The position numbers and the translations under genes are program-made. Below the pieces are notes generated by a model that searched no databases, was not told where the DNA came from, and saw only the letters and a program-made list of their open reading frames with translations. A stretch of DNA of 64,000 nucleotides from Haliotis rubra (Eukaryota), in NCBI RefSeq assembly GCF_003918875.1, contig NW_025766957.1, forward strand, positions 1,860,001-1,924,000, written 5' to 3'. How positions within the stretch are numbered: position 1 is the first letter of the stretch; each line of letters begins with the position of its first letter. Of this stretch, positions 9,900-39,490 are shown in pieces.

Positions 9900-11750
9900 A
9901 AAACAAAATCTACATTCAATAAAATTTTATTCAATGAATACATGAGCAGCAATACCATTGTAGTGAAATACAATTTTCTAAAATGTATTACTTGGCAATG
10001 TAACCGTTAAAACACTAGACAATTACAGCAAAGAGATCTAATAATTCAGTTGGACATGAGTGCAATTTACCAGGTACAGTCACCTGTCGTGCTAACTGGC
10101 TCAATCTGGCAACTCCAGCTCTTGCGTCAAGGATCTCACAAGCATTTTCAATCATTGGGGTGAGGACACCTAACAACATCCTTATCCCTTAGATCCCACT
10201 CCCACCAAACACCCTTTAAGATGTTAAGGGTCAGGCAAACATTTCAATCCTTAGGGTAAGTTGTGAGGTAGGGTGTACTTCAAAATGATAAATCCAAAGC
10301 AAGTGATGAAACTCACTGTATTCACTGTTCTTCTGAGTTTAGTGAAATCAACGGCCATTATGCATGTACAAACAGATAAACAAGTGCTGATGACTTGGTA
10401 GAAGAGCACTAATGGTTTGTGATAACAGCCATGGTCCCAGTATAGGCTGTTGGATAATTGGATGTTCTCATTAGCCGAACTTGAGAGTTCAATCCTCTGT
10501 GCCATGCTAATTGAAATGTAAAATAGTGCACCTGGTAAAGTGCACTAATCCTGTTCAGTTGATTTTTTAATTGAGACTTGGACACATAACAGCACAGACA
10601 AATGATTCATTGAACAAAATCAAAGCATATACAGCTAACCTCAGAAAAAACATAACTTTTTGATTAATGAGCTAAGCCAAGTTAACAATTTTGATCTTGG
10701 ATAATGTTTTTTTAGATCAGAGGTTTACTGTGATATAGTCAAGCATATTTACAGAAACTGCCTTCGGAACTTAAACTTCACTGTTTATCTCTGTTTTGTT
10801 TCTTCAGGAACATTTATAGTAGTTAAAAATGTTGAAATATTTTATCAATCTGAAACTCAAAAATATTTCGTAGCTAAATTAGATTTATACATATGAAGGC
10901 TATTCTTCCAAGATAAAGACATCGTAATGTGTGTCTTATTGACATGATTAAACAAAACAACAATCATCCCAAGGATTACAGTGCAAGACAAAGAAAAATA
11001 GGCACATGTTGACAATTTGTAAAAATGCCTTACAAGAACAAAAGGATATTTGATAAAAATACAAGTTCACACTAAAACACTGATCTGTGTAACCCAGTTT
11101 TGCTTCAAGTGTAATGTATGAACTTGGATTGAACTTTGCAACATTTTATTAAAATCATGAACTGAATGAATCCTATATAAAAATGAAAACACTTATTTAC
11201 AGGAAGGACATTGTATTTCAATTTTTTTCTTGGTTACAATGTTTCTTAGGCACCATTTCACAAAGCTATTGTAGGGCTAGAACTATCCTAACCCCTATAC
11301 CTTAACATAAGACTTACAACAGTTGTAGCCCCATGACTGCCTGGTGAACAAGAGCCCTGAACATGCAAGTACTGTGTGATGAATAGAAACACATAAAGTG
11401 ACATGGATTTTAGCCACTTCTAGCATTATTCCAGCAATATAACAACTGGGAGGAATTGAATCAAGGCCTTAAGCATGACAAGCAAATGCTTAGGCCATTA
11501 GGCTACCCCACTTTCATAAGACATTAAAATGTAAGTCTACTTTAGTGATACTGTTAAAAAAGGTCTTGGTAGCCTCAGGTTTAGAAATACAGAGTACTGG
11601 GAGGATCGTCACTGATCGTCACTGTCCGTGAATGCAGTGTGAACACATAGAAGTGATAAGTACACATCACTGCTTACAACAACCTATGGAGATAACTGAT
11701 GTGACAAGGAGCTATCTCCCCGCTGGTATCAACATTTAGGCCCCGATTTC
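9900..11750 (-). other. SRSF3: SRSF3-like copy A terminal exon (mostly 3' UTR)
   Basis: ttctttgcAG acceptor at 11752/11751; first ~140 nt nearly identical to 38172-38310; AATAAA at 9931-9926 in a block shared with 39440-39485; 3' end approximate. Confidence 0.7.
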
Positions 11751-13285
11751 CTGCAAAGAAATAAATGAAATCCATGAACATTTAACAAAAAAAACAGGGG
11801 CAATGCTTCAACTCAGATCACTGATCTACATATATATCGAGATAAATTCAAATTTGAAACACGTTTCATAGACTGACTTATCAGTAGTTTGTGCATCCCA
11901 GCATTTTTCAGCGAGAGGTGGTTTAAGCTTATAACCCCACCCCCCAAAATAAAAGCAAAATTTCTTAAGCATATAACCATCACCTTTCAGATTTTATTTG
12001 CTCCATAAAAGGTAATATTATGAGTATATTACAGCAACTCTGTGTATCCAACTTTCCTATTATGGGCAAGGAATATTGAAAAAGAAATTGAGGTATGATA
12101 AAGTGAGCTGTGGTTTGCCTGGATATTTTTAAACATTTTCCTTAAATACTTAAATGCTCTTAAAACATGCACTCACTTTGCAAAACAGGTAATTCTTCAG
12201 TATCAACAGTCAACAGCTTATCTGCAAGAGAGAAAGAATAAATTAATGGTAAATGAGGCCTTGTACTCACACACAATATAAACCCAGTGACTTTTAATTC
12301 ATCAATAGAATAATGTAACTGCACTCAATTTACATCAATCTACAATACACCAATCAAGTACTTAACAAGTGTAAACAAATGAACTCTAAGTGACTGATAA
12401 AAATGTTAATGCAATCAAGTACTATTTCATCACATTCTTAGGTTCATGAAGCAAGAATTTAATTTTTTAAACATAAGTTCATGGCTGGAAAAGAAACATT
12501 TTGCTTTCCATTTTAAGAGCATGTGGTCATGGGCTATATAGTGCATATTACCAACATCACGACAATATCAGTATATTCCACTCCCAAACAAAACAAGAAT
12601 CTAAGCAACAAAGAAGGGGGAGGGAAGCACATTCAACACTGTCCACCAAAGGAAGCTTCAATTTGATCAGGTACTAACAACTTTTCACTTAACTAAGCCC
12701 ATGTCTACCAACACTATAAGACCTTGACTGAACAACTTAAGGAATCCCTTAAGTATACAGATGTTAAAGGTAGATTTAGTGTCGTTAAATGTTTTTCTAA
12801 AATATATCCGACCTGTACACTAAAGGAGGGTTAATTGCATCAAAAGTAGTACACATCAGTTGAAGCATTTTGTGAGACAATGTTGATGCTTCCACAAGCA
12901 GAGGGAACGTCATGCTGATCACAAACACAGGACTGTTACACAAATAATTATGGTTATCAACCCAGCTATATATACAACCTACGAAATCACACAGCTGCCA
13001 CTAGTCTGTGATAACTTTAATATTTACAGATGCTGCTACAAATATTATCCTCTCTTCTATATAAGCAAAACTGATAATGTCCCAAGTTGCCTTACTATTT
13101 GTTAAATATGAGAGCATAACTGAATGTTTACTACTGGAAAGATCACAGAGACAGACATTAAGAATGGTTGCTTTAAATTGGCAGCCTAGGAAAAGTAGTT
13201 TAGGTGCATATTAAGACAGGATGGCAGTAATGACACTGGCTGCTGTGCTTTTTCTATAATGAAGGAGGCGAGGTGTACGCTACCT

Positions 13286-13439
13286 CTAGTCGTTTTCCTC
13301 TCTCTCCTTGCTCAATTTTGAATGAGGGCTTCTGCTACGATCCCTACTCCTACCCCTAGATCGGGACAGACTCCTACCCCTAGACCTGGATCGGCTTCTA
13401 CCCTTAGACCGACTGCGGCCCCGAGAGTGGGACCGTGAA
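13286..13439 (-). CDS. SRSF3: SRSF3-like copy A exon 5 (RS domain, stop)
   Basis: tttcAG acceptor; SRSHSRGRSRSKGRSRSRSRGRSLSRSRGRSRDRSRSPHSKLSKEREEND*. Confidence 0.85.
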
Positions 13440-13909
13440 CTGAAAGATCATCCATAAAGAAATAAGCCAAAAGAGAACCAGGGTAAAAGAAGGGCGCGCA
13501 ATTAGAGATTGAAAAATGCCAATTCAGCTGATTTGTTCAAAAATTTACCTTTTTAAAAAACATTGACTTATACTCAAAAGTAGCTAAAGAACACTTGAAT
13601 TTTTTCATATGACTTGAGTTCATCGGGTGGGTTTTGCAACACAATGCCTTCTGATCTGGATTTCTTTTACTTCATTTGAGACATTTACTTTCTCATGGCA
13701 CACAGTGGATTAGATTGAGCATCTGGTTAATACACAAACAACACCAAAACACTCTTCCAAACTGCTGAAAGATCTTAACATGAGACTTTTGGAAAGCATG
13801 TGTTCTATGGCATTCTCATTTCATGCAGAAGGTACTGAACTCAACTACAACTCAAAATAAGCATACAACTGCATGAACTACCAAATATGTAGATTAGACA
13901 CCATCTTAC

Positions 13910-13996
13910 CTGCTGCGGCTACGACGACGAGGTGAATTTGAATCGCTGCGACTTCGCCTACGCGGGGAGTAGGATCTGCGACGTGGGGAGAAAGAT
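13910..13996 (-). CDS. SRSF3: SRSF3-like copy A exon 4 (RS domain)
   Basis: gcAG..GTAAGA, 87 nt, phase 2/2; SFSPRRRSYSPRRRSRSDSNSPRRRSRS. Confidence 0.9.
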
Positions 13997-14380
13997 CTGC
14001 AAGTTGACAAATTAAATCCGTAATAATGATGACAGGGGATGATGCAGAAGAGCTGACTGAACGGCTGGCAGCAGCTATGACTCTTTCAACATGCAACAGC
14101 TGACAAATCGAGAACCAAGTTGTCAAGACCTGATTGGCTGGACAGTAAACACTCTCCAACCAGGCGGCTTTCACAAAGTTTTTAAAATTTTGTACTAGAC
14201 TTTATTTTAAATGTAAAATGAGTAATCTGACCTACACATGGCACTACATCTAATAATCAGATCCTATTACATTTTCAATTCTATCATGCCAAAATGAATG
14301 ATATGTCAAATAACTGATGGCAAGACAGTACAGCTTTAACATCCAAATGAGTCCTCTTGATAGTGCTACTATACCCATAC

Positions 14381-14896
14381 CCTGCATGAAGAGGTTGGGA
14401 CGAATCTGCGAAGGTTAGAAGTAGTAGTAGTAGTCCCTAACGTTGCTTTGTATGCATGTTGCAGAGGAAAAGTTGTAAGGCGTTGACAACTTCATTCTGT
14501 ACATAAAGTTGACGGTTGCTTTGTTGATTATAGACGATGTGTCGCTTTAGGGGGTTCATTGTAGATGGGACAGGCTGAAAGCCCTAGTCTGGGACCTGGT
14601 ACGAACGATGGGGGACTGGATTGATGTTGACGCTGACTGAAGAGGAGATTGGACGGCCTTGGACGATGTGACTGCCCACTTGCACTTGCCCGCTGACTAA
14701 AAATGTGTGAAGGGATGGATGGTAAACGTAGAGCGAGCGGGCGCAAGTGAAGGCAGGTGTCGGGGCGGGCTGGCTGGCGAGCAGCTGGTGGTAGGAGTAG
14801 TTAGGGGGCTGATAATGCTATATGAGAACAGTCCGATGAATTTGGAGCAAGCAGCTCATGTGGCTGATGGCTGGTAGTAGTAGTGGAGACCGGAGC
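14381..14896 (-). other. SRSF3: Probable poison (PTC) cassette exon, copy A
   Basis: ctgac branch-like motif plus ccAG acceptor; in-frame TAG at 14820-14818; AGG|GTATGG donor; conserved in copy B. Confidence 0.7.
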
Positions 14897-16701
14897 CTGG
14901 AATTGGGTCAGTCAAAAAATCATCATGTGAATTGGTAATGGCCATACACCTGGTTACTAACACTACTTCTGCTAAAGCAATTACAACCTCATGTTAAACA
15001 ACATATCTATTAAAAAAACTTCAATTAGTCATATGAAAATAAGCTTAATATATTCAACAGTTTTCACTTTGACCTTAAATAATTTCAACTAACAGGTACA
15101 TGACAAATGAACATATATAAATCTGAAAACAATGATTTTCCATTGTCCACAAAATACAAATGGTTCAATATTTGTTCTCTATTTCTTTAAGGTAGTAACA
15201 AACAAAAGCATAGAACAGCTAAGTTGGTTGGTTGTTTAACGCCACACTCAGCACTATTCCAGCTACATGGTGGCGGTCTGTAAGTAATGGAGTTTGGACC
15301 AGACAATCCAGTGATCAGCAGGATGAGCATCAATCTACGCAATTGGGATGCAATGACGTGTCAACAAAGTCTGCAAGTCTGACCACCCGATCCCGTCAGT
15401 CGCCTCTTACAACAAGTATGGGTTACTGAAGACCAATTCTATCCTGGATCTTCACTGGTCAGAACAGCTGTGTATTGTGTTAGGTGTATTACTGTTTTGA
15501 ACCAGTATTCCAGTCATATATTGGCATGTCAGCGTAAAGTGGGAAGGAAGCCAAAAGAAATGCATTTCTATCCATTTAGGGGAAATTCCAAAGCATTCAT
15601 ATGGTGCTGACAAAAATATAAACAATCTGGAGATTCAAAGATTCCTAGGGGACAATTCTGCAGTGAAGTGAACTGCAGTCCCTCAAATAAATGCCACCTG
15701 GTCCCAAACATGCACGTAGACACTATAGGGGCTCTTATGAACAAACAACAATGCACTCTTGTATCACCATAGACCCACACCCTGAACTTTGTTTCCAAAA
15801 GTACAAGAGTATAACCTGCAAGCTCAAAGATAAATTTCAAACAAATTTGTTATTCAAAAGAAATGCCAGACTCTGCATGAAATTGAAAGACTTGAAGAGT
15901 GAACACTTATTAACACTCAAACCCTTGGGGTACAGGCCTATGTTATAACAGTCATGATGTTACCACCAATTTACAAAGATTCATTTCAAAATTAATGCCC
16001 AATCTTAGAAGCCTTCAATAACAGTTTTAGTACTTGTATAAGTTCCAAAATTGAAAACTTGCACTTAAGTGTAACACATAGAGGCAAAGGATGAAATTTC
16101 AAGAAATGGCAGTCTAGAATTTTGATATTACATACAAGTTACATGTACACAAGACTTCTAGACATGATGATCTGTGATACCAAAATATCAAAACAATGTT
16201 ACATTATATTTAAGCATCAAAACAATTTGAAAGAATTCAATACTATTCCTAAACATAATCTGCTTTGAACATATTGCCAAAGTGTTCCAAAAGCAGTGAA
16301 CATACAAAACAAATAAAATGAATTACACATTGGTTTGTATAAGAACAAGATTATTGCCCGAAGTGCTGCCAAAGCATTTTGTATATTGGGGTATACAACC
16401 AATAAGTTTCATTTGAAAATAAAGGTACATTAGTACAATGTTTTTAAATCCAGCTGAAATATACATGCATGCCATGAATTTGATAAAATTAAACCAAAAC
16501 GGTTGGGGACAACATTAATAAAACATACAAATGGAAGCACATATAAAGCATACTTACAAATTTCATGGATATTTTTCATTGTGATCCAAATACAATATTA
16601 AAATCATGACAACATAAGTTTAGAATGAATGTGAAAGATTTTCATTGGCCAAGATGATGCAGCAAGAATATTTTATCTTCCTATAACAGAAGAAAACTCA
16701 C

Positions 16702-16833
16702 CGTGATCTGCCTCTCCTTGGTCTGTAGTCATCATAAGAAGAAGAACCCTGACGGCCAACTGGCGGTCCTCGACTTCCCCAACGAGACTTTCCTGACGAC
16801 ATTTCAACATGCACACGACGACCATTCATTCTC
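16702..16833 (-). CDS. SRSF3: SRSF3-like copy A exon 3 (RRM end and linker, no zinc knuckle)
   Basis: ctgcAG..GTGAGT, 132 nt; RMNGRRVHVEMSSGKSRWGSRGPPVGRQGSSSYDDYRPRRGRSR. Confidence 0.9.
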
Positions 16834-16870
16834 CTGCAGAAATCAACTTATGATATTAGCAGTTATTTAA

Positions 16871-17162
16871 AGGTCACATGCAACCAAAAGGACAAACATA
16901 ATTAAAATTATCACTTATAAAGGACATATAATATAAATTGCTGATTATGAAAAAACATATAAACACAATTATAAGCGTACAATCGCAAATCAAAAGTGCA
17001 ATATTTTGTACTTGGGTTTACTTCCCTTCATTGCGGGGGGGTTCATAGCGTTATATTTCAACTTTATAAATTGAATTTGCATTTTTTTATCATTTGCTAC
17101 TGCAAGTCCATACCGAAAGGTATCAGAATCTGCAAAGTTGTGTTTTATGTTGCATGTGACCT
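16871..17162. mobile_element. Kolobok-like MITE in copy A intron 2
   Basis: TTAA|aggtcacatgcaac ... gttgcatgtgacct|TTAA; absent from copy B. Confidence 0.8.
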
Positions 17163-18404
17163 TTAATGTAAAATGTAAAATGAAAGGCACTTTTCACTCA
17201 GAAGTCCTACTTATCAAGCCCATATATCTCATGTATGACAGATGTAACAACTTCTTTTAGTTCTAATCATATCTAAAATAAAGAGCTACGTCTGTCAAAT
17301 ATACACCATAGCTGATACAAGCAGAGCAGATCAGTAGATGGTCTGCCTGGGGAATACAACTTTGAACAGTTTCAGACCAATGATCCTCCTGGCCATTTGA
17401 TGCTTGAGCTTTCAATCACTGCCCAAAGCAGGGCATAGATTTTCCAAACAATCTTAGCCCTTAGATTATTGTCCATGTTTTAATTTACTGCTATACTTAG
17501 TACAGTAAACATGACCTGAAATTTACTGATCAACAAAAACAGACATCTATGTTTTCCACAATAAATTTTAATTTTGTATTCAGTGGATTGATTTTAAAAG
17601 AAAATTTGGAAAATAAGCAATATTGTCAATGTCTACTAATCATATCAGACTTGAAAACATATTTTGAACTTACAGAATAGTGAATGTCTGATGTTCAGTC
17701 AAAGCTATCACCAATGTTATTCAGGCTATGTTAGTACCGTTAATCGACTTAGTAAGCAGCGTGTTTACACAAAATTTATACATTCAAAAGTGGATCATTC
17801 TAAGGGCAAATGGTGAACATTATTTCAATTCTAATAGCACTAGTATGGTAATGCTATATTTATTGATCATAACATTTCTTGCATTTACAAACGTCTTCAC
17901 ACTGGCAGACATGCCATTGTGTTTGGGTAGTCATGGCATTTTTCATCATAAAAACAAAACATCTGCATGTTGGATATACATGTATGCATGTCAAATAAAT
18001 ACACGTAAAAATTAGTGACCTGACCATATTTACTGTAATTTTGTGCTGCTTCTCTTTAGTCTTGTCAGAAAATGAAAAATAAACATTGATGCCATTTGGA
18101 AATGAGCTGCTTTTACAATCTCCAACACAAATGAGTTACCCGAGTTACAATAGGTATCCTAGTTTTGTACAATCTGCGACAGATTTCAGATAGGTTGATA
18201 GTTATATTGTATCTCCTCTTTACTTAAGATAGTGTATCTTTGAATATAAGACGTTAGAAGTAATCTCACCTTTGATTGTTTCAAAAATCTAAACCCCCCT
18301 AGACCCAAAAGCTTAAAAGAATTCAAGAAAATCAAGCTCCAGAATGTTCATCATCATAAAAGTCATTAATGCCAATAGGGCATTTACACTGGATTATCAC
18401 TTAC

Positions 18405-18619
18405 GCTCCATCAAGGGCTCTTGTGGCATCTTCAGCATCACGGGGATCTTCAAATTCAACAAATGCAAACCCTGGAGGCTTCCTGGCTACCCACACATTA
18501 CGCAAAGGTCCATATTTACTAAACTTCTCTTCAAGCTCTTGTTTGGCTGCACCATAACCGAGATCTCCAACATATACTTTGCAATCTAGTCGCCAGTCTC
18601 TTGTCGAATTACGTGCCAT
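18405..18619 (-). CDS. SRSF3: SRSF3-like copy A exon 2 (start, RRM); predicted full protein 195 aa
   Basis: [10 protein letters not shown]...[33 protein letters not shown] is the SRSF3/SRSF7/Rbp1 RRM; phase-2 intron after LDG as in vertebrates; acceptor at 18634/18633. Confidence 0.92.
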
Positions 18620-20353
18620 TGTGCTGTTATTTCTAAAAACAAATACAAATGCATGCTATTATACTTGTTAAGAACATCATCTTGTAGCATACTTTTCAAA
18701 TTGCAGAGTATTTACCACTATAGAAAGGCCCTCAATCTACAATCAGAATTTGATGAGATTTCACACAATTTATACAAAGTTGACATCATGGTATATCTTT
18801 CTGCATTATACTGCAACCATGTGTAATCATGAAGCCAGGTTCATTGAAAATGTCTACTTTTCTCAGTTTTTTCACCTTCCCATAAGGTCACCATGGTCCA
18901 TGTCAGATGAGTCTTGCTAACAAGAAGTATACAGTAAATCCCAGTGAATGCATATTACAATAAATTAGGAAAATACCAGTACATTGTGCTTTTCAAAATC
19001 ATTACATGCCTTCACGTTCATCTTACCTGAAAGGTTTACATATGTGAGTGAGTGAGTTAAAATTTATCGTCACATCGGCATTATTTCAGCAATATCGAGA
19101 CGAGAACAATGGTTTACATATGTAAGAACCATTGAGTGAGTGAGTGATTTGAGTTTTACGCTGCACTCGGCAATATTCAAGCAATATGGCGGCGGTCTGT
19201 AAATCGAAGTGTTTCCGCATTTAATTACGAGGTAGATGTTGCATTAATGATCCCCAATTTAACTTAAAATTTGTTCCTTTTTTAACTTTTGCTTATGCAT
19301 GGAAACTTTACCCGTAGGGGCGATCGCATTGATGACATTCAGGCTGCTTCTGATGGATGGATTTTCTCCTTCGTTGGTTTCACATAACATAACTCACAGT
19401 GTAAATGCACTCTAAATAAAAGCTGTTATGAAAATTATTTACGTTATGACAACTATTCATAGTTGAGTACATACTGCCATTTGCCTCTGCTTTTCAATAA
19501 TTGATGTCCTATTTTGGTTGCCATTCCATCAGAGATGTGTTTGTTTAGTTGTGAGAAGGGGATGTGCGGAAGGACGGTCTATACAAGAGCTTGTTAACAT
19601 AAACATGATAAATGAAGCTACTTATTTAACTAATCCCGGCCTGTTTCATAAATCAATTGGGATCAGTTAAAAAACTATATATTTGATTTTTGTTTTCTTT
19701 GGATAAAACATACATATCGATAAACATACGACCAAACCGGAAACATGCCACTGGATATTTTTCGCACGCTCTGCGCACGCGCACAGCGAGTTGAAAAGTC
19801 TAATGTGAAACCAACGAATATTCTTGCAATATTAACGGGAATCGTAATGGCCGATCGAAAACATATGACGATCTAAACGTAAGATCACGCGGAAAGACGT
19901 ATGGACACACAACAGCAATCAAACTCTTCGGAATTCTTTCCCCGGTTATTCTGATGTTGAAAATGGAAGTTAATAGTACCCTATTTTGAACTAGCAGACA
20001 TTTATGAACGAGTCCTTGTCCATTTGTGTATTTGACCTATTTACCACGTTTGACTAGCACAATACAGGTTATCGTAGGTCTTCTAACTCATGCGAAGTCC
20101 CATGTAATCGAACATCTCAAACACTCCGCCTACTTCACTGCACCAGCAGTATTATTTGGTTTAAGTACTCCTGCATCGCATTTTGAAAGCTTGAATATCA
20201 CCGAAACCAGGGAATCAAACATGGCCGTGACCCGACGAAAGTGTGCTTCGGTCTCACCACATGTTAACCTTTCATGCAGGTCATGCTCTTTATCAGAATA
20301 CGGAAACGCAACAGTTTTTTCAAAATCAGCAAGCATGTGATGCTTCTACTTAC

Positions 20354-29101: not shown

Positions 29102-30512
29102 TTTTAACCATATTTTATTTCAAGAGAAAGAAAAGGGATTGGCAAACAAGCTCAGTGAGCTTATATAAATGCCTCTCCCGAACATGTACATATTTACGGA
29201 AGTTATTTACAGAAAATCAATTGCCAATAAAATAATAGAATGTATTGGTACCACACGTTTGCTCGTTGAATAAAATATGTTTTTTAATTGTTGAACTTTA
29301 TTAGTAATTTCTTAAGTCATGTTAAATCTTTTTGAAAACTGGATGAAATGGTGAACAGAGGAGAGTCTACGTTAAAATTACCATATAATACCGAATGTAT
29401 GTCGTATCCATGTTGATAAAAGTACATTGAAATACATAAGTCATTATACGACGGACAGGTGAAGAAGTAGTGAATATTATCTTCTCTCGGTTGACCGCAA
29501 GAGCAGGCCCGGTTTGAAGAGATGTGTCTATGGAACTTATGAGAATTTAAATCACTACACCCGAGCCTGAGGTGTGCATGGATTACTTGACATTGTCTAT
29601 TACCAATATTGATATCAAAGAAGAACGAGGCATCTTTACGAGTAGATATTATACTTTTGAAATCAAAGTGATTATTCACAGAGCATGTTAATTGTGGCAG
29701 ATCGTTCCATTGTCTGATTACATCTGGTATAAAGGATCTAGCATAGAGGTTAGATATGCAATAGATATTGCGAATTTGTTCAGAATTTCTTAGAGTGCAG
29801 TTGCTATTATGTGATTTAGATGGGATTAAGTTTTGCAAGTAAGTCGGAGTTTCATTATGTACAATTTTGTGCATCAGTTTTAGTTTTTGAATAGACCTTC
29901 TTTCATCCAAAGGGTAAAAATTGGTTTCGAAATATAACCATAACTGGTGCCGCGTACAACACCACATATTGTGCGTAGAGCATCTAGGTGTAATTTTTCA
30001 AGGGAGTGACTTTGTTCTTTACTGCAGTTGTCCCAGATATGAGAACAGTAGTCAAAGAGAGGAAGAATAGATTGTTTGTAAATAGTGTCTAGGCTCTTAC
30101 GTGATAATCTATATTTCAAGGACCTAAAGCAGTTGATCATCGGGGATACTTTCTTTATTATGTTGCTAATGTGCTCATGCCAATTACAGTTACTTTGCAA
30201 TGTTAAACCAAGATGTTTATGATGAGAAACTACTTTAATATTGATATTATTCATGTGAAGATCAGGAAGTCTAGTGGGTGTTTTTTTACGTGAAAATAAT
30301 ATGCTTTCAGGTTTGTTAGGATTAAAAACGACATTCCAATCTCTAGCCCAATTAACAATTTTTGTAAGTCATTATTAAGGTAAGTAGCAGTATTATCAGG
30401 ATTATCAACAATAATATAAAGGGATGTGTCATCAGCGAATAAACGGATATTACTATCAATGTTATCAACTAAGCCGTTAATGTATATCAGAAATAATAAT
30501 GGACCCAAAACG
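29102..30512 (-). mobile_element. 5'-truncated CR1-group non-LTR retrotransposon (frameshifted RT)
   Basis: VLGPLLFLIYIN...IRLFADDTSLY, C-terminal CSCG..ED..HYFFTCP, 3' stem-loop and aataaa; 9-bp TSD gaagacttg at 29093-29101 and 30513-30521. Confidence 0.88.
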
Positions 30513-30885
30513 GAAGACTTGAGATCAAAAGGAAATCAGGCTGGTTTATGTCAACAAAATCTACATATACAGTACTTTGTGATTGTTACAACTCTAACAC
30601 AGGTCTAGTAATATCATGTAAGTGCTGGTCCTGTGTTATTTTTAGAGGGAACAATATTCAGTTGTGCAGTTTTTAATGATGGGGTACTACTACCATTACA
30701 GCATCTTCAGTTAGAGTCTATATAATTCCATTATATTATACATCTCTGCACTTGGATAATAAACTCATTCACAACTCACCCAAAACCCAACCCCTAAGTC
30801 ATAATTTCCATTGCTATCTAAAATTATATATAAATCAGGCCAGTGTAAATATTTGTATTTCTTTTCAGCAATATATATTTCCGCA

Positions 30886-31100
30886 ATGGCACGGAATGCA
30901 ACAAAAGATTGGAGACTAGATTGCAAAGTGTATGTTGGAGATCTTGGTTATGGTGCAGCCAAACAAGAACTTGAAGAGAAGTTTAGTAAATATGGACCTT
31001 TGCGTAATGTGTGGGTAGCCAGGAAGCCTCCAGGGTTTGCATTTGTTGAATTTGAAGATCCCCGTGATGCTGAAGATGCCACAAGAGCCCTTGATGGAGC
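30886..31100 (+). CDS. SRSF3: SRSF3-like copy B exon 2 (start, RRM)
   Basis: Acceptor at 30867-30868, ATG at 30886, GC|GTAAGT donor; [21 protein letters not shown]...[18 protein letters not shown]. Confidence 0.92.
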
Positions 31101-31589
31101 GTAAGTGATAATCCAGTATCAATGCCCTAAAGTCACTAGTGGCTAGGTGTTGGTGAAAATGTGAAGTGCTTCTCGTTTACTTTCAAGTTACTTCTGCATA
31201 GGGCAGTCTGAAAAAACTCAAGCATCTAACTAACTTAAGGCGACTCATTGGCCTAAGACACTGTTCAAATTTGTATCCCTTGGGGAGAACAGGAACTACT
31301 GATCTACTTGTATCATGTAGGATGCCTATGCCAGCAGCATAATTTGATGCTTCACATTTGAAAATGAGGGATATGTGAATGCTACAATATTGAAAAGTTT
31401 TCTTTCAGATTTAACTAATTCTTTACTTTAGATGTTGTTAGAACCAACACAAGTTAGTATTCATGTCATACATGAAGTATATTCTGTGGATAATATAGAA
31501 TTGGGTGTGAGTATATCTCACAATGAAAGTTCTTTTAATCTTGTGTTCTACATTTATCTGTTGCTAAGATGGTAAGTTGATTTCTGCAG

Positions 31590-31721
31590 GAGATTGAATG
31601 GTCGTCGTGTGCGTGTTGAAATGTCATCAGGAAAATCTCGTTGGGGAAGTCGAGGGCCGCCAGTTAGGCGTCAGGGTTCTTCTTCTCATGATGACTACAG
31701 ACAAAGGAGAGGCAGATCACG
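31590..31721 (+). CDS. SRSF3: SRSF3-like copy B exon 3
   Basis: ctgcAG..GTAAGA, 132 nt; RLNGRRVRVEMSSGKSRWGSRGPPVRRQGSSSHDDYRQRRGRSR. Confidence 0.9.
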
Positions 31722-33662
31722 GTAAGATTTCCTCTTTTGCTAGAGTAGGAAGGGAAGTATTTTCTTACTGCATCATTTAGGCCAATGAAAAATTCTTTGC
31801 ATTTGTTCTAAGATTATGTTATGACTGGTATTGTAAAAGTGATTTCATTCAAAAAAGCAATGTGCTAATAAAATGTTTTAAGCATGTTTTGGATGTGAAC
31901 ATTATTAGATGCCATGGCTTAGATCAAAATATTGTATTTGATCTTAAGTAATGTGGATCCAATTACTCTCTCTGACCGATGCTGTCCCTAACCAGTACTT
32001 TTGAAATTTGTATAAAATTCATTGCAGTTATATTTTCTCCTTTTGCTTCAAATAAAATACTGGTTATTAGCTTAGGTACTTAATTTTGAAATCAATTGTA
32101 ATTGGAACCACAAAATTGATATCTCGTAAGCCTTTCATGTCTCGTTTATCATGATTATTGGTGCCTCTGCTAAGATGTTTTCTGCAAGTCTTAACATATT
32201 CATGCAATTCTTACTTCACACTGAATTTCTATGATTATCAGCACATGTTAGCAATAATTCATTTCTCACAGATTAAGTCTCTAAAACTTTACTCTCTTTT
32301 TTTGTTCAAAGGAACCTACTGCACAGGTTGCAATATCTTTTTGGAATTTAAGTTTTTAAATATCATGTATCATTGCTTTCAGTTAATATTGTGTATTTAC
32401 TTGATTAAGAACACTTTGGCCCAGCAGTCTGTTTTAAAATGAATTTAGGAATTGCATGCTAATCCTTCTAGTCATTTCATATATTTGTATAAAACATACT
32501 GATAATGTTTTAATATTTTGATACATCACAGATCACCATGTCTAGAAGTCTTGTGTACATGTAACTTGTGTGTAATTGATCAGTATTTGTGAGTATATAT
32601 CAAAATTAAGAATGCAATTTTTCAAATTTTCAACCCTTGTTACATGAAAGTGCAAGTTTGCGATTACAGAACTTAGATACCAGATAAATGTATATAGGAG
32701 CTGTTTGAACTTAGGACATTACATTTCTGATGAAACGTAATAAACTTTAACATGACTTTCATATCTAGTCTTGCACTTTCTTGTAATTAGCAAATTTGTT
32801 TGAAATCCTTTAATTGGTGATCAGTTTAGCTTTGTACTCCGTGTGAAATTCATTCTCTAAATCATTTCTTATTTTGGTCACATGGTAATGAATCAACCTT
32901 TTCCCTCTTCCATATACTGTAATTCAATACAGTATTAATCCTTTGTTTCATTTTTACAAACTCTAGCTTCAAGGCTTATTTTCTCACCCTTTTAGAAATA
33001 GGTATAGGATTTGGGTTTGTGGGATGCTAAAGTGGATTGCTGTTTGTCAATATTAGCCCTTTAGGTTTCAACATGCATGTGGGTGTCCCAGGCATCTAAG
33101 GCACTGCACTTCACTGTGCAGAACTGCCTTCCTTGGGCGTGCCAGAAATCTTTTATAATGGGTTTGAATCCCGGTTTGTCAGCACCACACCTGTGCTCAA
33201 AATCAAAAAACATCAGAGATGTGTATCACTTTTGGCTTTCCTCAAAAATTATGCTCTCACGCTGATATGTACAAATTGGAATACTGTTCAAAGCGGTGAT
33301 AAACCCAACTTAGTCTTAATGCATGAATGTTGTTCTTAGCTTGTATTATGTTAACTACTGAAAGAGATAGACCAGTGCATGAGAACCATTCGTAATTTCT
33401 AGACAGAATAGAAAATCATTGTGCTCAGATTTATGTTATGTTCATTTGTCATGTACCTGTTAGTTGAAATTATTGAAGGTCAAAGAGAACATTTCTGAAT
33501 ATGTTAGGCTTATCTTCATATGACTAACTGATGGAATTTTTTTTAATATGTTGTTTGATGTGAGAGGAGTGGTAGTAATTGCTTTAGCAGAAGTAGTGTT
33601 AGTAATCAGGTGTATGGCCATTACCGATTCACATGATGATTTTTTGACTGACCCAATTCCAG

Positions 33663-34243
33663 GCTCCGGTCTCCACTACTACTACCAGCCATCAGCCACA
33701 TGAGCTGCTTGCTTCAAACTCATCGGGCTGTTCTCATGTAGCATTATCAGCCCCCTAACTACTCCTACCACCAGCTGCTCGCCAGCCAGCCCGCCCCGAC
33801 ACCTGCCTTCACTCACGCCCGCTGGCCTGCCCGCCCACCCGCTCTACGTTCACCATCCATCCCTTCACACATAACCCTCACCCTTGCCATCGTCGCGGGT
33901 TTCGTTAGTCAGCGGGCTAGCAAGTGCGAGTGGGCAGTTACATCGTCCAAGGCCGTCAAATCTCCTCTTCAGTCAGCGTCAACACTTCAGCCCCCCATCG
34001 TCTGTACTGAATCCCAGACTAGGGTTTCAGCCCTGACTGGGCTCGGCCTCTCCCATCTACAATGAACCCCCTAAAGCGACACATCGTCTATAATCAACAA
34101 AGCAACCGTCAACTTTATGTACAGAATGAAGTTGTCAACGCCTTACAACTATTCTTCTGCAACATGCATACAAAGCAACGTTAGGGACTACTACTACTAC
34201 TACTTCTAACCTTCGCAGATTCGTCCCAACCTCTTCATGCAGG
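33663..34243 (+). other. SRSF3: Probable poison (PTC) cassette exon, copy B
   Basis: gactgacccaattccAG acceptor; in-frame TAG at 33739-33741; AGG|GTATGG donor; C-rich motifs. Confidence 0.7.
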
Positions 34244-34628
34244 GTATGGGTATAGTAGCACTATCAAGAGGACTCATTTGGATGTTAAAGCTGTACTGTC
34301 TTGCCATCAGTTATTTGACATTTCATTCATTTTGGCATGATAGAATTGAAAATGTAATAGGATCTGATTATTAGATGTAGTGCCATGTGTAGGTCAGATT
34401 ACTCATTTTACATTTAAAATAAAGTCTAGTACAAAATTATATAAAAAAAATGTGAAAGTTGCCTGGTTGGAGAGTGCTTGCTGTCCTGCCGATCAGGTCT
34501 TGACAACTTGGTTCTCGATTTGTCAGCTGTTGCATGTTGAAAGAGTCATAGCTGCTGCCAGCCGTTCAGTCAGCTCTTCTGCATCATCCCCTGTCATCAT
34601 TATTACGGATTTAATCATCAACTTGCAG

Positions 34629-34715
34629 GTCTTTCTCCCCACGTCGTAGATCCCACTCTCCACGTAGGCGAAGTCGCAGTGATTCAAATTCACCTCGTCG
34701 TCGTAGCCGCAGCAG
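34629..34715 (+). CDS. SRSF3: SRSF3-like copy B exon 4 (RS)
   Basis: ttgcAG..GTAAGA; SFSPRRRSHSPRRRSRSDSNSPRRRSRS. Confidence 0.9.
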
Positions 34716-35211
34716 GTAAGATGGTGTCTAATCTACATATTTGGTAGTTCATGCAGTTGTATGCTTATTTTGAGTTGTAGCTGAGTTCAGTACCTTCTGC
34801 ATGAAATGAGAATGCCGTAGGACACATGCTTTCCAACACACTCATGTTAAGATCTTTCAGCAGATTGGAAGAGTGTTTTGGTGTTGTTTGTGTATTAACC
34901 AGATGCTCAATCTAATCCACTGTGTGCCATGAGGAGAAAGTAAATGTCACAAGAGGTAAAGAAATCCAGATTGGAAGGCATTGTGTTGAAAAACCCGATG
35001 AACTTAAGTCATGTGAAATACCTCATCTGATCTTATACTACTTTTGAGTAGTGTATGATATATAGATTAAGTGCAAGATTTCAGTTCATGGAAAAAAGTT
35101 GGTTTTAGAAAAATCAGCTGAGTTGGCATTTGTCTGTTTTTAAAACTTGTTCCTAGCTTTCTTTTTGCCCTGGTTCTCTTTTGGCTTATTTCTTTATGGA
35201 TGATCTTTCAG

Positions 35212-35467
35212 TTCACGGTCCCACTCTCGGGGCCCCAGTCGGTCTAAGGGTAGAAGCCGATCCAGGTCTAGGGGTAGGAGTCTGTCCCGATCTAGGGGTA
35301 GGAGTAGGGATCGTAGCAGAAGCCCTCATTCAAAATTGAGCAAGGGAGAGAGGAAAACGACTAGAGGTAGCGTACACCTCGCCTCCTTCATTATAGAAAA
35401 AGCACAGCAGCCAGTGTCATTACTGCCATCCTGTCTTAATATGATGCACCTAAACTACTTTTCCTAG
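35212..35467 (+). CDS. SRSF3: SRSF3-like copy B exon 5 (RS) with frameshifted C-terminus
   Basis: RS tract as in copy A, but a 1-nt deletion near 35345 puts TAG 35362-35364 out of frame; the unspliced frame ends at TAG 35465-35467. Confidence 0.7.
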
Positions 35468-36790
35468 GCTGCCAATTTAAAGCAACCATTCTTAATGTCT
35501 GTCTCTGTGATCTTTCCAGTAGTAAACATTCAGTTATGCTCTCATATTTAACAAATAGTAAGGCAACTTGGGACATGATCAGTTTTGCTTATATAGAAGA
35601 GAGGATAATATTTGTAGCAGCATCTGTAAATATTAAAGTTATCACAGACTAGTGGCAGCTGTGTGATTTCGTAGGTTGTATATATAGCTGGGTTGATAAC
35701 CATAATTATTTGTGTAACAGTCCTGTGTTTGTGATCAGCATGACGTTCCCTCTGCTTGTGGAAGCATCAACATTGTCCCCAAAAAGCTTCAACTAACATG
35801 TACTTATATAGAGCGAACATTAAAGTAAATTCTATTTAGAAAACACCTAATGATTTTAAATCTACTGTACCTGTAACATTGAGGTTCCAACTCTTCACTG
35901 TAAACATTAATTAATTAAATTTGCTCATGATATCTCATGGTGTAATTATATATTGAACTGATGTAAAAAATAGTTTAAATGTCCTTTGGTTTTGTATCAA
36001 GGGGGTGTATAATTGATACCTAATCAATTCGATGCATTCTTTAGTGGACAATGTTGAATGTGCTGCCCTACTGTTGTCTATGTCGCTTAGATCATTTTGT
36101 GCTTGGGAGTGGAGTGTACTGGTATTGTCATAATTGTGGTAATATGCAGTAACTGACCCATGGCCATTTAACAACAAATTGGACTGCAACAATTTTTCTT
36201 TTTCAGCCATTATTGTTTAGAAGTAAATCTAACATGTAAATGTAATGCAGGACTGTTCAATTGCATTATTTTTTAACAACTGTAGGAGAAATGGTTTCTT
36301 TATGCTTTAATATGATGCCAATGATTTTATAAATTGATTTATTATTGCCCTATGAATGAATTTAAAGTCATTTAGTACTTTTGTTTCTTACAAGACTGCT
36401 TTTGTCATTTATTATACCTTCATCTCTTACAGATAAACTGTTGACTGTTGACACTGTAGAGTGACCTGATTTACAAAGTGAGTGCATGTTTTAAGAGTAA
36501 TATGTTTATTTAAATTAATTAACACACATATTCCTATTTTGCTTGGATTCAATAATGACTTCTGGTCATTGTGTTTTCAATAGTGTTTTGATAATTTAAA
36601 AGATTTTCTGACTTAAACAATGTTGATAAAACTGTACCATCTTGTGGGTACTCATGATCACATAATTGTATCACTTTAGCCCATTATGGTTTTAAAAAAG
36701 AGAAAACTCAGCAGTATATAAATGGCAATGTGTGATGTTTAAATGTCCTGGCAATACACAACTCTGTTTATCATAAATCAGTGGTGACAG

Positions 36791-37148
36791 CAGGGATTTA
36801 CATGGAGTCCTGTATTTCAGGGTCCCGGGGGCTCATACTCCAGGGGTCCTCATTTTCAGGGGTCCTCGACAACAAAATGGGGGTCCAAGACACTTAAATA
36901 TTATTAGTAATACTGTTTTTGTATTGTGTATCATGATCATCACATTGTTACAGTAATTAAATTGCAAATAATACCTTAACCCAGGTAGTAGCAAACTCAG
37001 TGATACGTTATTGTCACTTGATTGAAATTTTTACAAACAGTATTTGGACTTTTTCTCAGTCCCAGTGGACGCGCTAGTAAATTTTGTTGCGTCCATTGTC
37101 AATTATTATGAGTATAGGACGCAGGGATTCGCGTCCTGTAAATCCCTG
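36791..37148. mobile_element. hAT-like MITE with 6-bp TSD
   Basis: cagggatttaca ... tgtaaatccctg; tgacag on both sides. Confidence 0.7.
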
Positions 37149-37162
37149 TGACAGTTGTCATG

Positions 37163-37347
37163 ATTACACAATGCCTTTTAGAAAGTGGTCAAATGTAACA
37201 TATGTTATATTTGGGATTACACTTTCTTAGGTGCGATTAGGTGCCTGACTCTGACGGTGTGGCTTCGAATACTGGATGGGACTCAACCCACCAAAGGTAC
37301 TTGAATCTGTACTGTACTAAGAAAGTGTAATCCCAAATATAAAACAT
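37163..37347 (-). mobile_element. Family D SINE with 5' inversion
   Basis: Tail on - strand (37172-37230) joined to body on + strand; TSD gtgacagttgtcatg. Confidence 0.7.
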
Positions 37348-37499
37348 GTGACAGTTGTCATGTTCGTATCATATTTTCATTGCCCAGATTAAAACAAATA
37401 TTGGGTCCCACTTGGATAGTGATGGGGATGATAGTCATTGTGTGATACAAGTGAAAGAAACATGATGATGAAAGTTGATGGTTTCATACTTTTAAAGTA

Positions 37500-37952
37500 C
37501 AGTCAAATCCCGATGAGTCGAATCGCTGGGGACCAAGTAATAAATTCGACTCATCGATGTATTCGAGACATATCTATGAGGGTAGAAAAAAAGATGATCC
37601 AGTCCAAATTCCTCCGCCTAAGCATTTGTTTATCTAATGATTTCCCTATCACTAATAGGGGCACCTTATCAGTTCCAGTCTGATTAGCACAGACAGTGAT
37701 TTCCGTAAAATCACTAATCTGCCTTTTTGAACTCACCCGTCAATGGCGGAAAGGTGTGAGCCGCGCTGGTTTGTTAATTGGATCAGTTTGCTACACCAAT
37801 CAACTTCTCATTGACTGACTTCGGCTTATGTGTACAAGATTGCTGTTGTTTGAATCTCATGGGACCAAATTTTCTTCTCCAGTCATCGTGTGTATTTATG
37901 AGACGAATTCGTGACACGAGACACCGGCATTCGACTCATCGGGATTTGACTG
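37500..37952 (-). mobile_element. pogo/Tigger-like internally deleted element
   Basis: Perfect 24-bp TIR cagtcaaatcccgatgagtcgaat, TA TSDs; residual ITVCANQTGTDKVPLLVIGKS (pogo-type DDE motif). Confidence 0.85.
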
Positions 37953-38171
37953 TATTTTGAATTAATTTCATGTTTTGTCCATTACTTTGGATTATTTGAC
38001 AAACAGTTCTGAAAAATGCTATGATGCACTGAAAACTACTGATGCACCTTGTTTCAAACTCATCAAACTTGATTTATCATGATACCTATAAAAATTTATC
38101 TTGCACTGTAATAGAGGTGAAAATTGTCAGCTGACTTGTATGTCTTATGGATTTCATTTGATTCTTTGCAG

Positions 38172-39490
38172 GAAATCGGGGCCTAAATGTTGAGACCAGC
38201 GAGGAGATAGCTCCTTGTCACATCAGTTATCTCCATAGGTTGTTGTAAGCAGTGGTGTGTACTTATCACTTCTATGTGTTCACACTGCATTCATGGACAG
38301 TGACGATCCTACCAGTACTTTTATTACTAAACCCGAGGCCAAGGCCTTTTTTTACATTATTACTGGAGTCATGCATTTTATTGTCTTGTGTATATTCATT
38401 ACACAGTCCTGGCATTTTCACGGCCCATTTTTACAAAGCAATCATAGCACTATGACTTTAAGTTAATGTTAAAGTATAAGAGTTGGATGGTTGTAGTCCT
38501 ACAATGGCTTTGTGAAGTGGGACCATTGAGGTTTGTATATAGCAGTCCAGTTCACTCGTCGGTTTTGGCAAGTTGGTTGTTCATACTTATAAGTGATAGA
38601 CACATGAATCCTAAAGGTGCAGTATTGTGTGATATACACTGTACTTCCTGCTCCTGAATGTTTGTTTGTTTTCATAGGAATCATTCATTTGATGTTTTAA
38701 GTGAAATTTCACAAAGTACAATCTGTCTTCATGTGCTACACTTGAAGCTAGACTGGGTTTTACTGGTTGCTGTTTTAGTGTGAAGATAAATTTTTATTGC
38801 AGACCCTTTTGTTTTTGTTTGGCATTGTTTTAAATTGTCAACATGTGCCTTGTTTTTGTGTCGTGTATAGCCATCCTTGGGAAGAATCATGTCATTGGGA
38901 AATACATGTCAAAGTCTTTATCTGATATAATTTTTTTCTTTCCGCTCTGAATACAAGTATTTTAACTGGTGAATAATGTTGAATTTCATATTGCTAACAT
39001 TATTTGAACATTTCAGTCTATCGGACAGATATTCATGTAGAAAGAGAAAAGGAAATATTTTTCTGACATGAGCAAGGGAAAATAAGTTCTGTAGGCAGTT
39101 TGTAAAGAGGTTTGGCTGTATATCACAGTATACCTCTGAGCATTAAGAATATTATCCAAGATCAAAATTTTTCAACTTGGCTTTGCTCATTAATCAAAAC
39201 CAAGGTATGTATTTTTTTCTGAGGTTAGATTTTTATGCTTTCATTTTGTTTAATGAATTACTAGTATTGTCATTGCTCAGTTAAGTGTTTAAGTCTTGCC
39301 TGAAGAAAAAAAGTTGAACAAAATTATTAGAATGCTAGTGCTGCAAGTGATGAAATTACTTTGGAGAGTATTTTCATGGTTATATTGCCAAATAGTAGAT
39401 TTTTGAACAATTTTGTATTTCTCTCTACAAAGTTCATGCTGCTCATGTATTAATGGAATAAAATTTTATTGAATGTAGATTTTTGTTGAA
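38172..39490 (+). other. SRSF3: SRSF3-like copy B terminal exon (mostly 3' UTR)
   Basis: ttctttgcAG acceptor; AATAAA at 39457-39462; homologous to the copy A terminal exon. Confidence 0.7.

Follow-up and report, generated by a model that had tools for sequence, protein, structure and literature searches.

Organization of the locus

The 64,000-nucleotide stretch of Haliotis rubra DNA analysed here (the window) carries two inverted genes of the SRSF3/Rbp1 type arranged head-to-head: gene A, on the minus strand, runs from ~20,440 to 9,905, and gene B, on the plus strand, from ~28,100 to 39,483. Self-BLAST of the window reports inverted homology between positions 9,905-20,564 and 39,483-27,975. 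These limits define the two duplicated units, A covering 9,905-20,564 with an AATAAA motif at 9,931, and B covering 27,975-39,483 with an AATAAA motif at 39,457. The identity between the arms reaches 92.5% in the ATG exon, 85% in the 132-nt exon and 89% in a 2.5-kb block (A 12,848-15,217, B 33,331-35,804), and is 55-70% outside these three segments. Both genes, including their poison-exon isoforms, are already present in RefSeq for H. rubra, A as XP_046573769 and XP_046573770 (‘serine/arginine-rich splicing factor 3-like’) and B as XP_046573771 and XP_046573772. The exon joins of gene A match the proteins P0153 and P0152 exactly. The head-to-head SRSF3-like pair proposed in the initial annotation is thus borne out in H. 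rubra by the inverted homology, the exons and the splice sites. The spacer, previously put at ~5 kb, measures 7.4 kb (20,565-27,974) between the promoter blocks, whose CCAAT boxes lie at 20,492-20,479 and 28,049-28,062; it contains a tandem array of 15 copies of a 49-bp unit at 25,813-26,569, and the two ATGs are 12.3 kb apart. In H. rufescens and H. asinina, the sequence lying 5' of the B orthologue aligns collinearly with this spacer.

Gene structure and main transcript

The promoter-proximal conserved block of gene A (20,463-20,564) holds its CCAAT box and is 79-81% identical to B 27,975-28,078. The 5' non-coding exon of A ends at 20,354, with its donor GT at 20,353, while the promoter block and 5' non-coding exon of B occupy 27,975-28,182, the exon end being placed by homology with A. 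The ATG exon, which encodes the bulk of the RRM, lies at 18,405-18,632 in A (CDS 18,619-18,405, 215 nt), where it includes a 148-nt tract identical to B, and at 30,869-31,100 in B (CDS 30,886-31,100). Splicing was followed in contigs assembled from runs of other Haliotis species that are presumed to be RNA (RNA-type contigs). Their loose ends at 30,884/30,885 read ‘...GGTATTAAG|AAATAACAGCA’, an A-type exon-exon joint, and the GT..AG joint 31,100>31,590, seen in A-type contigs aligned on B, fixes the position of the gene B intron. The 132-nt exon, encoding the end of the RRM and the linker, spans 16,702-16,833 in A (CDS 16,833-16,702), with A-type letters in the spliced RNA-type contig X10 record 9, and 31,590-31,721 in B, as located by splice sites and RNA-type contig joints. 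The same two kinds of evidence place the 87-nt RS exon of B at 34,629-34,715; its counterpart in A is at 13,910-13,996 (CDS 13,996-13,910). The joint 31,721>34,630 has an A-type first base and a depth of 119 in X10 and 84 in X17, depth in such contigs being a poor measure of expression. The 46-nt stop exon covers 12,176-12,221 in A, where a TAA at bases 2-4 ends the 145-aa isoform, and 36,433-36,478 in B, reached through the GT..AG joint 34,715>36,433, also written 34,712(+3)>36,430(+3); in B coordinates, this joint from the 87-nt to the 46-nt exon has a depth of 119 in X10 and 37 in X17. Lastly, the terminal 3'UTR exon spans 9,905-11,750 in A, its acceptor being located in the sequence, and 38,172-39,483 in B, as given by alignment, RNA-type contigs and the AATAAA; a contig loose end at 36,478 reads ‘AAATCGG.GCCTAAATG...’ and leads into this exon.

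The dominant spliced RNA-type contigs, which come from two related Haliotis species and are of the copy-A type, join the 87-nt exon to the 46-nt stop exon and hence encode a 145-aa protein. The main mRNA would therefore comprise a 5'UTR exon, coding exons of 215, 132 and 87 nt, the 46-nt stop exon and a long 3'UTR exon, and its product would be a 145-residue protein with a single RRM and a short RS tail. Since its stop lies only 42 nt upstream of the last exon junction, this mRNA should escape nonsense-mediated decay (NMD).

Protein family

Pfam analysis of the A and B proteins reports RRM_1 only (residues 15-80, E about 1e-18). The best match among solved structures in the PDB is SRSF3 (9asq_H, E 2.5e-38), followed by SRSF7 (2hvz) and SRSF3 (2i2y). 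Arginine and serine make up 74% of the residues encoded by the 87-nt exon and 64% of those encoded by the alternative RS-extension exon described below. A Pfam search for zf-CCHC in P0153, P0151 and P0270 returned no zinc knuckle, and the description of the proteins as RRM plus RS without a knuckle agrees with both the domain search and the exon composition. A zinc-knuckle paralogue is present at an unlinked locus, on contig C2200, with the knuckle CYECGDRGHYAYDC and a near-threshold zf-CCHC match (E 6e-4, 20.2 bits for a cutoff of 20.8). Within the RRM, A and B differ at two residues, M73L and H79R. R79H in A is a change in β-strand 4 of the domain.

Origin and age of the duplication

The gene tree unites Haliotis A and B in one clade (SH-aLRT 97), as expected for the lineage-specific duplicate pair suggested initially, and rubra A groups with rufescens A-like with a support of 88. 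RefSeq lists two genes for H. rufescens, and residues diagnostic of rubra A and B recur in its A-like and B-like proteins. Intron divergence amounts to 0.32-0.37 between A and B, as compared with 0.23-0.30 between B and H. rufescens B and 0.12-0.15 between B and H. asinina B; that the first of these values exceeds the second upholds the view of the duplication as old. Intron quartet site patterns (30:4:3, 35:6:6, 44:6:2 and 57:3:7) favour the grouping of B with asinina B. The introns had also been described as diverged and carrying different transposons, and we find a SINE-like insert in A (15,224-15,460) versus a LINE-like ORF (29,317-30,508) and a very high-copy repeat (about 33,140-33,340) in B. 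Judged from the tree and the intron distances, the duplication is Haliotis-specific and older than the rubra/rufescens split.

These data also bear on the reading in which the arms are alleles, haplotigs or a chimeric palindrome instead of two loci. Several 1-2-nt indel disagreements between the assembly and H. rubra read contigs would fit such an artefact, but the 32-37% intron difference with different repeats in each arm, the A-B divergence exceeding that between B and its H. rufescens orthologue, and the two H. rufescens genes with matching diagnostic residues make it extremely improbable. In an H. rubra DNA run, A-type and B-type letters have about equal depth in three coding exons (120-158 each out of 260-310). 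In the DNA run of organism D, exon 2 comes in two variants, each with about half of the depth, which fits two copies, or two alleles.

Poison exon and cassette exon

Between the 132-nt and 87-nt exons, both copies possess a C-rich alternative exon of ~0.5 kb with a premature stop. The gene A poison exon (14,381-14,896, 516 nt), the splice sites of which were located, has an in-frame stop after 25 codons, and the A-like isoform P0269 of H. rufescens reads into this A-type exon. The gene B poison exon (33,663-34,243, 581 nt), mapped with the P0270 peptide, encodes LRSPLLLPAISHMSCLLQTHRAVLM followed by a stop. Transcript support is provided by the RefSeq isoforms P0270 and P0269 and by the donor joint 34,243>34,630 seen in the RNA-type run X17; A-type letters at 33,714-33,738, within the exon, are present in RNA-type contigs. 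The poison-exon stop is followed, far downstream, by at least three junctions, and from this position we assume that the isoform is sensitive to NMD, which its low depth in the RNA-type contigs of related species (7-10 versus about 120) fits.

The divergence of the poison exon is 0.03-0.06 in all six pairs formed by species and paralogues across three species, as compared with 12-37% in introns; these near-identical islands are explained by constraint across the three species. Each poison exon contains 22-24 WCWWC motifs where about 9 are expected (z 4.5-5.4, both copies). We take WCWWC to be the SRSF3 motif, which would make these candidate SRSF3-type sites.

Contrary to the initial statement, not every regulatory element is shared by the two copies, the exception being a 57-nt in-frame cassette of the B lineage (32,532-32,588, SPCLEVLCTCNLCVIDQYL), mapped with the P0270 peptide and by alignment. 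It is also found in B isoforms of H. rufescens and H. asinina, whereas in gene A a 22-nt deletion removes the end of the cassette and its splice donor.

Alternative RS exon, gene conversion and selection

The alternative RS-extension exon and a tract of ~430 nt following it occupy 12,860-13,439 in A (CDS 13,439-13,286, 154 nt, giving the 195-aa isoform) and 35,212-35,790 in B, the two tracts being 99.3% identical. This fourth exon is a minor alternative exon (depth 7-12 in RNA-type contigs, versus about 120 in constitutive exons) that extends the protein by 50 RS residues in a minor isoform. Its CDS is 1 nt shorter in B owing to a gap after 35,345 that occurs in the assembly only: all four sequencing runs compared with B read ‘+A behind 35,345’, and the H. 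rufescens orthologue lacks the gap. The difference between 153 and 154 nt may thus be an assembly indel. Of the exon sizes given initially (215/132/87/154-or-153), the first three stand on their splice sites, while the fourth belongs to a minor exon whose 1-nt difference has no read support.

Over exon 4 and its 3'UTR tract, A and B differ by 0.007, whereas orthologues differ by 0.05-0.12 (rufescens) and 0.08 (asinina). An A-B difference of 0.7% that is smaller than the orthologue difference of 5-12% therefore indicates that recent gene conversion accounts for the similarity of this tract in the H. rubra pair. Likewise, dS(A,B) is 0.169, below the dS of 0.238 between B and rufescens B. Values of omega of 0.02-0.14 point to purifying selection on both ORFs. 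The interpretation of the A/B similarity as independent retention may hold for the constrained poison exon, but much of the 3' half owes its identity to recent conversion. In the mechanism we propose, selection would keep the poison exon of either copy nearly constant from species to species; in addition, the 3' halves would be homogenised through conversion from arm to arm of the inverted pair, most clearly the RS-extension exon and the following ~430 nt.

Alternatively, every feedback element could have been conserved independently while promoters and C-termini diverged, yielding a cross-regulating, dose-buffering, subfunctionalised circuit. The constraint on the poison exon in both copies, a promoter similarity limited to about 100 nt, the apparent excess of A over B in RNA-type contig depth and the B-specific cassette are all compatible with it. 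The C-terminal divergence, however, rests on the 1-nt frameshift that none of the four runs contains and that the B orthologue of H. rufescens lacks, and the exon bearing it is minor and deleted in H. asinina B. Furthermore, conversion rather than constraint accounts for the tract of highest identity, and the cross-regulation step is putative. We consider this circuit possible but doubtful. We favour as probable the reading of the locus as a genuine, already annotated Rbp1/SRSF3-type pair, derived from an abalone-lineage inverted duplication that pre-dates the rubra/rufescens split, with a shared poison exon and conversion of the 3' part.

Expression of the two copies

RefSeq models exist for both genes. 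Among the RNA-type contigs of two related Haliotis species, those that are spliced and abundant belong to the A type (depth 107-130), and copy A would supply most of the mRNA, as far as such contig depth can tell. B-type contigs have a depth of 3-10 and are unspliced, extending over introns and the poison exon, and could be pre-mRNA or DNA carry-over. No spliced B-type mRNA was seen directly among the RNA-type contigs of related Haliotis species, and transcription of B otherwise rests on the RefSeq isoform models. Copy B might accordingly be weakly expressed and largely unproductive or redundant, making little protein and being kept similar only by conversion from A. The spliced and unspliced contigs just described would suit this, as would the poison form P0270 being listed first among the H. 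rubra RefSeq isoforms of B. Nevertheless, in three species the B ORF is uninterrupted, and omega between orthologues is 0.04-0.05; a conserved cassette exon is peculiar to the B lineage, for which RefSeq also lists several H. rufescens isoforms; and exons 1-3 of B, in which 23 A/B differences persist, have not simply been overwritten by A. A redundant copy B is therefore unlikely, and we retain two genes under selection that share a poison exon.

Putative cross-regulation and comparison with known systems

Each protein would promote inclusion of the poison exon in its own pre-mRNA and probably also act on that of the other copy, mutual recognition of the transcripts being plausible because the RRMs are nearly identical. 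Cross-regulation between the copies is thus plausible from their sequences, and the dose of the two genes would be controlled jointly, as that of a single unit. Going further, the inverted layout itself may be functional, recurrent arm-to-arm conversion making the poison exon, the RS-extension exon and the tract 3' of it, as feedback elements, co-evolve in the two genes. We hold this to be improbable; if true, the pair would for tens of millions of years have remained tied together as one unit that senses dose, without the decoupling seen in other SR paralogues, and the unconverted 5' halves (promoter, B-only cassette, R79H in A) would be free to specialise.

Cross-regulation and dose buffering restate a published general model (PMC4379411; Kumar and Lopez 2005, via PMC4274639). 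Fresh SR-gene duplicates are predicted to be auto- and cross-regulated, feedback buffering their dosage, and the emphasis is on poison exons being lost and replaced in SR paralogues (Lareau and Brenner 2015, PMC4379411). The abalone pair differs in keeping the ancestral poison exon in both copies, conversion slowing their decoupling. In Drosophila, Rbp1 and Rbp1-like are subject to unproductive-splicing feedback in which one paralogue acts on the other (Kumar and Lopez 2005, EMBO J 24:2646, as cited in PMC4274639), and knock-down of Rbp1 raises Rbp1-like (PMC4274639). Like the abalone genes, Rbp1 and Rbp1-like are lineage-specific paralogues of a zinc-knuckle-less SRSF3-type gene and encode short RRM plus RS proteins (145 aa for the main abalone isoform). 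The Drosophila genes are unlinked. The abalone duplication is independent according to the gene tree, and its copies lie next to each other in inverted orientation and have been partly homogenised by conversion, their cross-regulation being putative. Vertebrate SRSF3 contains an ultraconserved poison exon 4, and SRSF3 and SRSF7 cross-regulate (Anko et al. 2012, as cited in PMC4379411; PMC13228269). Like the abalone genes, vertebrate SRSF3 has a long, conserved, C-rich and motif-dense poison exon situated after the linker exon and ahead of the first RS exon. At 94-97% conservation within one genus, the abalone exon does not attain vertebrate-style ultraconservation. The paralogy of SRSF3 and SRSF7 is ancient, and the zinc knuckle distinguishes them, whereas in abalone the SRSF7-like gene is found at a third locus not linked to the pair.

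Structure of the inverted gene pair

The ORF listing and frame scans of the window report every coding piece of an SRSF3-like gene twice, on opposite strands, in gene A (20,564-9,905 (-)) and its paralogue, gene B (27,975-39,483 (+)). The RRM exon, whose product opens with MARN[S/A]T[R/K] followed by 20 protein letters not shown, lies at 18,619-18,405 (-) in A and 30,886-31,100 (+) in B. It is followed by a 132-nt linker exon (A 16,833-16,702 (-); B 31,590-31,721 (+)), an 87-nt RS exon (A 13,996-13,910 (-); B 34,629-34,715 (+)), and an RS-extension exon starting at 13,439 (-) in A and at 35,212 (+) in B. The coding-exon borders are canonical AG/GT in both genes, and the phases are identical. 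Self-BLAST of the window returns a single inverted homology, 9,905-20,564 against 39,483-27,975, in which A/B identity is 55-70% in bulk intron, 92.5% in the ATG exon and 89% over a 2.5-kb block, while the repeats differ between the two arms. A search of the entire 1.38-Gb assembly found only these two copies and a further paralogue, 69% identical, on a different contig. Given the two-copy structure, the inverted homology and the differing repeats, the pair described in the initial annotation is real and far beyond chance, including its shared exon phases, strongly diverged introns and different transposons.

Several repeats were observed along the way. The 5'UTR intron of B contains three overlapping ORFs (29,317-30,508 (-)) with a FADDTSLY motif resembling that of non-LTR reverse transcriptases. 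They are not found in A, and Pfam reports no domain in these LINE-like ORFs. A very high-copy repeat lies inside a B intron (33,138-33,336; word depth ~40,900 vs ~135 for single-copy sequence in contigs of X1, the H. rubra DNA run). A Tc1/mariner-type transposase remnant (5,098-6,090 (+)), with an HTH and a DDE_3 match (E 2.6e-8), is split across three frames.

Both products return Pfam RRM_1 only and are devoid of a zinc knuckle, as had been proposed, and their nearest solved structures are human SRSF3, then the RRMs of SRSF7 and SRSF3. An unlinked paralogue (C2200:680,352-683,003; L009 352-3,003) comprises an RRM, a long poly-Gly linker, a CCHC knuckle and an RS exon; its knuckle makes this third gene SRSF7/x16-type. 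A profile-free RRM search led to a Patella protein, which, used as a query, returned H. rubra RefSeq proteins identical to the predicted exon joins residue for residue. These are XP_046573769 (195 aa) and XP_046573770 (145 aa) for A, and XP_046573771 (160 aa) and XP_046573772 (145 aa) for B, all four on the same 3.76-Mb contig. RefSeq therefore already lists both genes, under the names serine/arginine-rich splicing factor 3-like / RNA-binding protein 1-like. Two other database proteins, P0266 (Gigantopelta-like) and P0267, were rejected as Haliotis proteins.

Transcripts, promoters and spacer

Contigs of four public runs (X1; X10, presumed RNA of a sister species; X16 and X17, from a more distant abalone, DNA and presumed RNA respectively) were aligned to B over window positions 30,750-36,700. 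Abundant spliced contigs (depth ~120-130) exhibit the GT..AG joints 31,100>31,590, 31,721>34,630 and 34,715>36,433. The last of these was unexpected, as it splices the 87-nt exon to a 46-nt penultimate exon (B 36,433-36,478 (+); A 12,221-12,176 (-)), which is kept in H. asinina and H. rufescens. This exon opens with A-TAA, bases 2-4 being the stop codon of the main 145-aa isoform, and its 3' loose end runs into the terminal exon (start at B 38,172 and A 11,750). With its stop 42 nt upstream of the last junction, just within the usual NMD-safe range, the 145-aa isoform should escape NMD. The RS-extension exon resides within the intron between the 87-nt and 46-nt exons, at a contig depth of only 7-12; its inclusion gives rise to the 195-aa isoform of A and of the H. 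rufescens B orthologue. Hence, in the exon series 215/132/87/154-or-153 nt first proposed, the first three members stand and the fourth is a minor exon. In the H. asinina B orthologue the RS-extension coding part is deleted (~370 nt gone, L011 ~14,198-14,235 against window 35,106-35,476), which fits the longest H. asinina product in RefSeq being 145 aa.

The donor of the 5' non-coding exon is at 20,354 in A and 28,182 in B, the A type being confirmed by loose ends at 30,884/30,885. Conserved promoter blocks with CCAAT boxes are located at 20,492-20,479 (A) and 28,049-28,062 (B), and thus place the inter-promoter spacer at 7.4 kb rather than the ~5 kb initially estimated. A tandem array (25,813-26,569; 49 bp x 15.4) occupies part of this spacer. 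A homologous array is found upstream of the H. rufescens B orthologue (L010 5,648-6,816), and in H. asinina collinear homologous sequence flanks the array position (L011 1,179-2,140 and 2,767-3,744).

Age and origin of the duplication

In H. rufescens (L010) and H. asinina (L011), the B locus has the same neighbours as in H. rubra, the tandem array on its 5' side and an M14-peptidase gene on its 3' side. The window region ~40,600-45,500 (-) is homologous to this M14 metallocarboxypeptidase gene of both species, and contains a tandem array of its own (43,399-44,557). A four-way alignment of H. rubra A, H. rubra B and the two B orthologues was used to count per-site differences in unconstrained intron. 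These amount to 0.32-0.37 between H. rubra A and B, 0.12-0.15 between H. rubra and H. asinina B, and 0.23-0.30 between H. rubra and H. rufescens B. Informative quartet sites overwhelmingly favour grouping H. rubra B with H. asinina B (30:4:3, 35:6:6, 44:6:2, 33:6:4 and 57:3:7). Both observations indicate that the duplication is older than the splits between H. rubra, H. asinina and H. rufescens, in agreement with the old age first assigned to it.

H. rufescens has two RefSeq genes whose diagnostic residues match H. rubra A (NST, RVHVEM) and B (NAT, RVRVEM). A tree of 35 mollusc and arthropod proteins unites all Haliotis copies in a single clade (SH-aLRT 97), within which H. rubra A joins the H. 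rufescens A-like protein (support 88); Mya, Sinanodonta and Mytilus pairs also group by lineage. The proposal of an independent, lineage-specific duplicate pair thereby finds support, the lineage in question being that of the abalones. When the 10 kb upstream of each B orthologue were searched with sensitive BLAST, no A-type promoter or exon was detected, the sole match being the paralogous B promoter; the H. rufescens spacer should therefore exceed 9.7 kb, while the H. asinina flank ends ~2 kb short of the expected A-promoter position.

Poison exon, B cassette and C-terminus

Mapping of RefSeq isoforms locates a poison exon between the 132-nt and 87-nt exons, at 33,663-34,243 (+) in B and 14,896-14,381 (-) in A. 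In P0270, the H. rubra B poison isoform, and P0269, an H. rufescens A-like isoform, the 132-nt exon is followed by LR[S/C]PLLLPAISHMSCLLQTHRAVL[M/I]*, and the donor joint 34,243>34,630 is seen in X17. The poison exon has a C content of 35-36%, against 16% in the neighbouring intron. WCWWC is the selection consensus of SRp20; each poison exon contains 22-24 such motifs, vs ~9 expected (z 4.5-5.4), an enrichment that provides a lead to candidate self-binding sites.

The initial annotation held that every regulatory element is retained in both copies. This fails for a 57-nt in-frame cassette of B (32,532-32,588 (+)), used by B-lineage isoforms in three abalone species and encoding 19 Cys-rich residues (SPCLEVLCTCNLCVIDQYL) between the linker and the RS domain: in its A counterpart (16,130-16,170 (-)), a 22-nt deletion removes the cassette end and the splice donor.

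Diverged C-termini had also been proposed. The assembly of B is devoid of one A after 35,345, so that EREEND* is replaced by a 40-residue tail. However, this A is present in all four runs, as read from contigs, whose assembly can drop variants, and the H. rufescens B orthologue has the normal end, KEREEKD. At four further places in this stretch, the assembly departs by a 1-2-nt indel from contigs of single-copy depth, which suggests residual indel errors in the H. rubra assembly; the H. rubra DNA contigs put these places at 30,880, 31,851, 32,338 and 33,205, in addition to 35,345. The 1-nt difference in B is more likely an assembly indel or a private variant than fixed divergence, and the frameshift is doubtful.

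Constraint and gene conversion

The A/B identity islands have two separable causes, constraint and gene conversion. Divergence of the poison exon is 0.03-0.06 in six of six pairs, orthologous and paralogous alike, a rate four to seven times below that of intron, and the alignments thus show cross-species constraint. Record 18 of X16 (88% identity) was dropped as counter-evidence, a second double-depth contig covering the same place.

The tract from the RS-extension exon to ~430 nt past its stop (B 35,212-35,790) behaves differently. A and B differ there at 0.7% of sites, against 5-12% between H. rubra and H. rufescens B and 8% between H. rubra and H. asinina B, and A is equidistant from both orthologues. 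Such a low difference in paralogues older than the species requires recent conversion. The dS of the coding exons (A-B, 0.169; B-H. rufescens B, 0.238; A-H. asinina B, 0.316) and a 148-nt perfect A/B tract in the ATG exon point the same way. In X1, the tract is a single contig of double depth with A-type letters. At the sequence level, these comparisons show the imprint of recent gene conversion between A and B. An alternative view of the 2.5-kb block as ultraconserved was dropped for the exon-4/UTR tract, where orthologues are 5-12% diverged.

Selection, expression and a putative circuit

Purifying selection acts on both ORFs: omega is 0.04-0.06 for the H. rubra copies against either B orthologue (H. 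rufescens, H. asinina), 0.02 when these orthologues are compared with each other, and 0.14 for the A/B pair. Expression appears asymmetric. In presumed RNA of both foreign species, the dominant spliced contigs are A-type by their 5' UTR junction and exon letters; B-type sequence is confined to a depth of 3-10 over B introns and the poison exon. For transcription of B, the support is thus indirect and comes solely from the RefSeq isoform models of three species.

Only two residues distinguish the RRMs of A and B (M73L and the A-specific H79R), so that each protein may act on both pre-mRNAs, where it would increase poison-exon inclusion, and total SR-protein dose would be buffered. The structural claim is confirmed, with corrections to spacer length, the minor fourth exon, the doubtful frameshift and one unshared element; its interpretation is partly supported, the cross-regulating circuit being inferred.

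The locus shows no new mechanism and its genes are already in RefSeq; what most sets it apart is that gene conversion is superimposed on an inverted pair of SR genes. It offers a compact natural example from a lophotrochozoan, in which two adjacent copies share a strongly constrained 0.5-kb poison exon, conversion tracts are measurable, expression appears asymmetric and three or more sequenced abalones provide orthologues, and might serve to ask whether conversion delays the regulatory decoupling of paralogues. SR-protein genes are a standard case of poison-exon homeostasis, the fate of this feedback after duplication being an open evolutionary question, and auto- and cross-regulation with dose buffering is what the literature predicts for newly duplicated SR genes (PMC4379411). 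The fly pair Rbp1/Rbp1-like (Kumar & Lopez 2005, as cited in PMC4274639) provides, as described in that citing paper, a precedent that would match the circuit proposed here for abalone.
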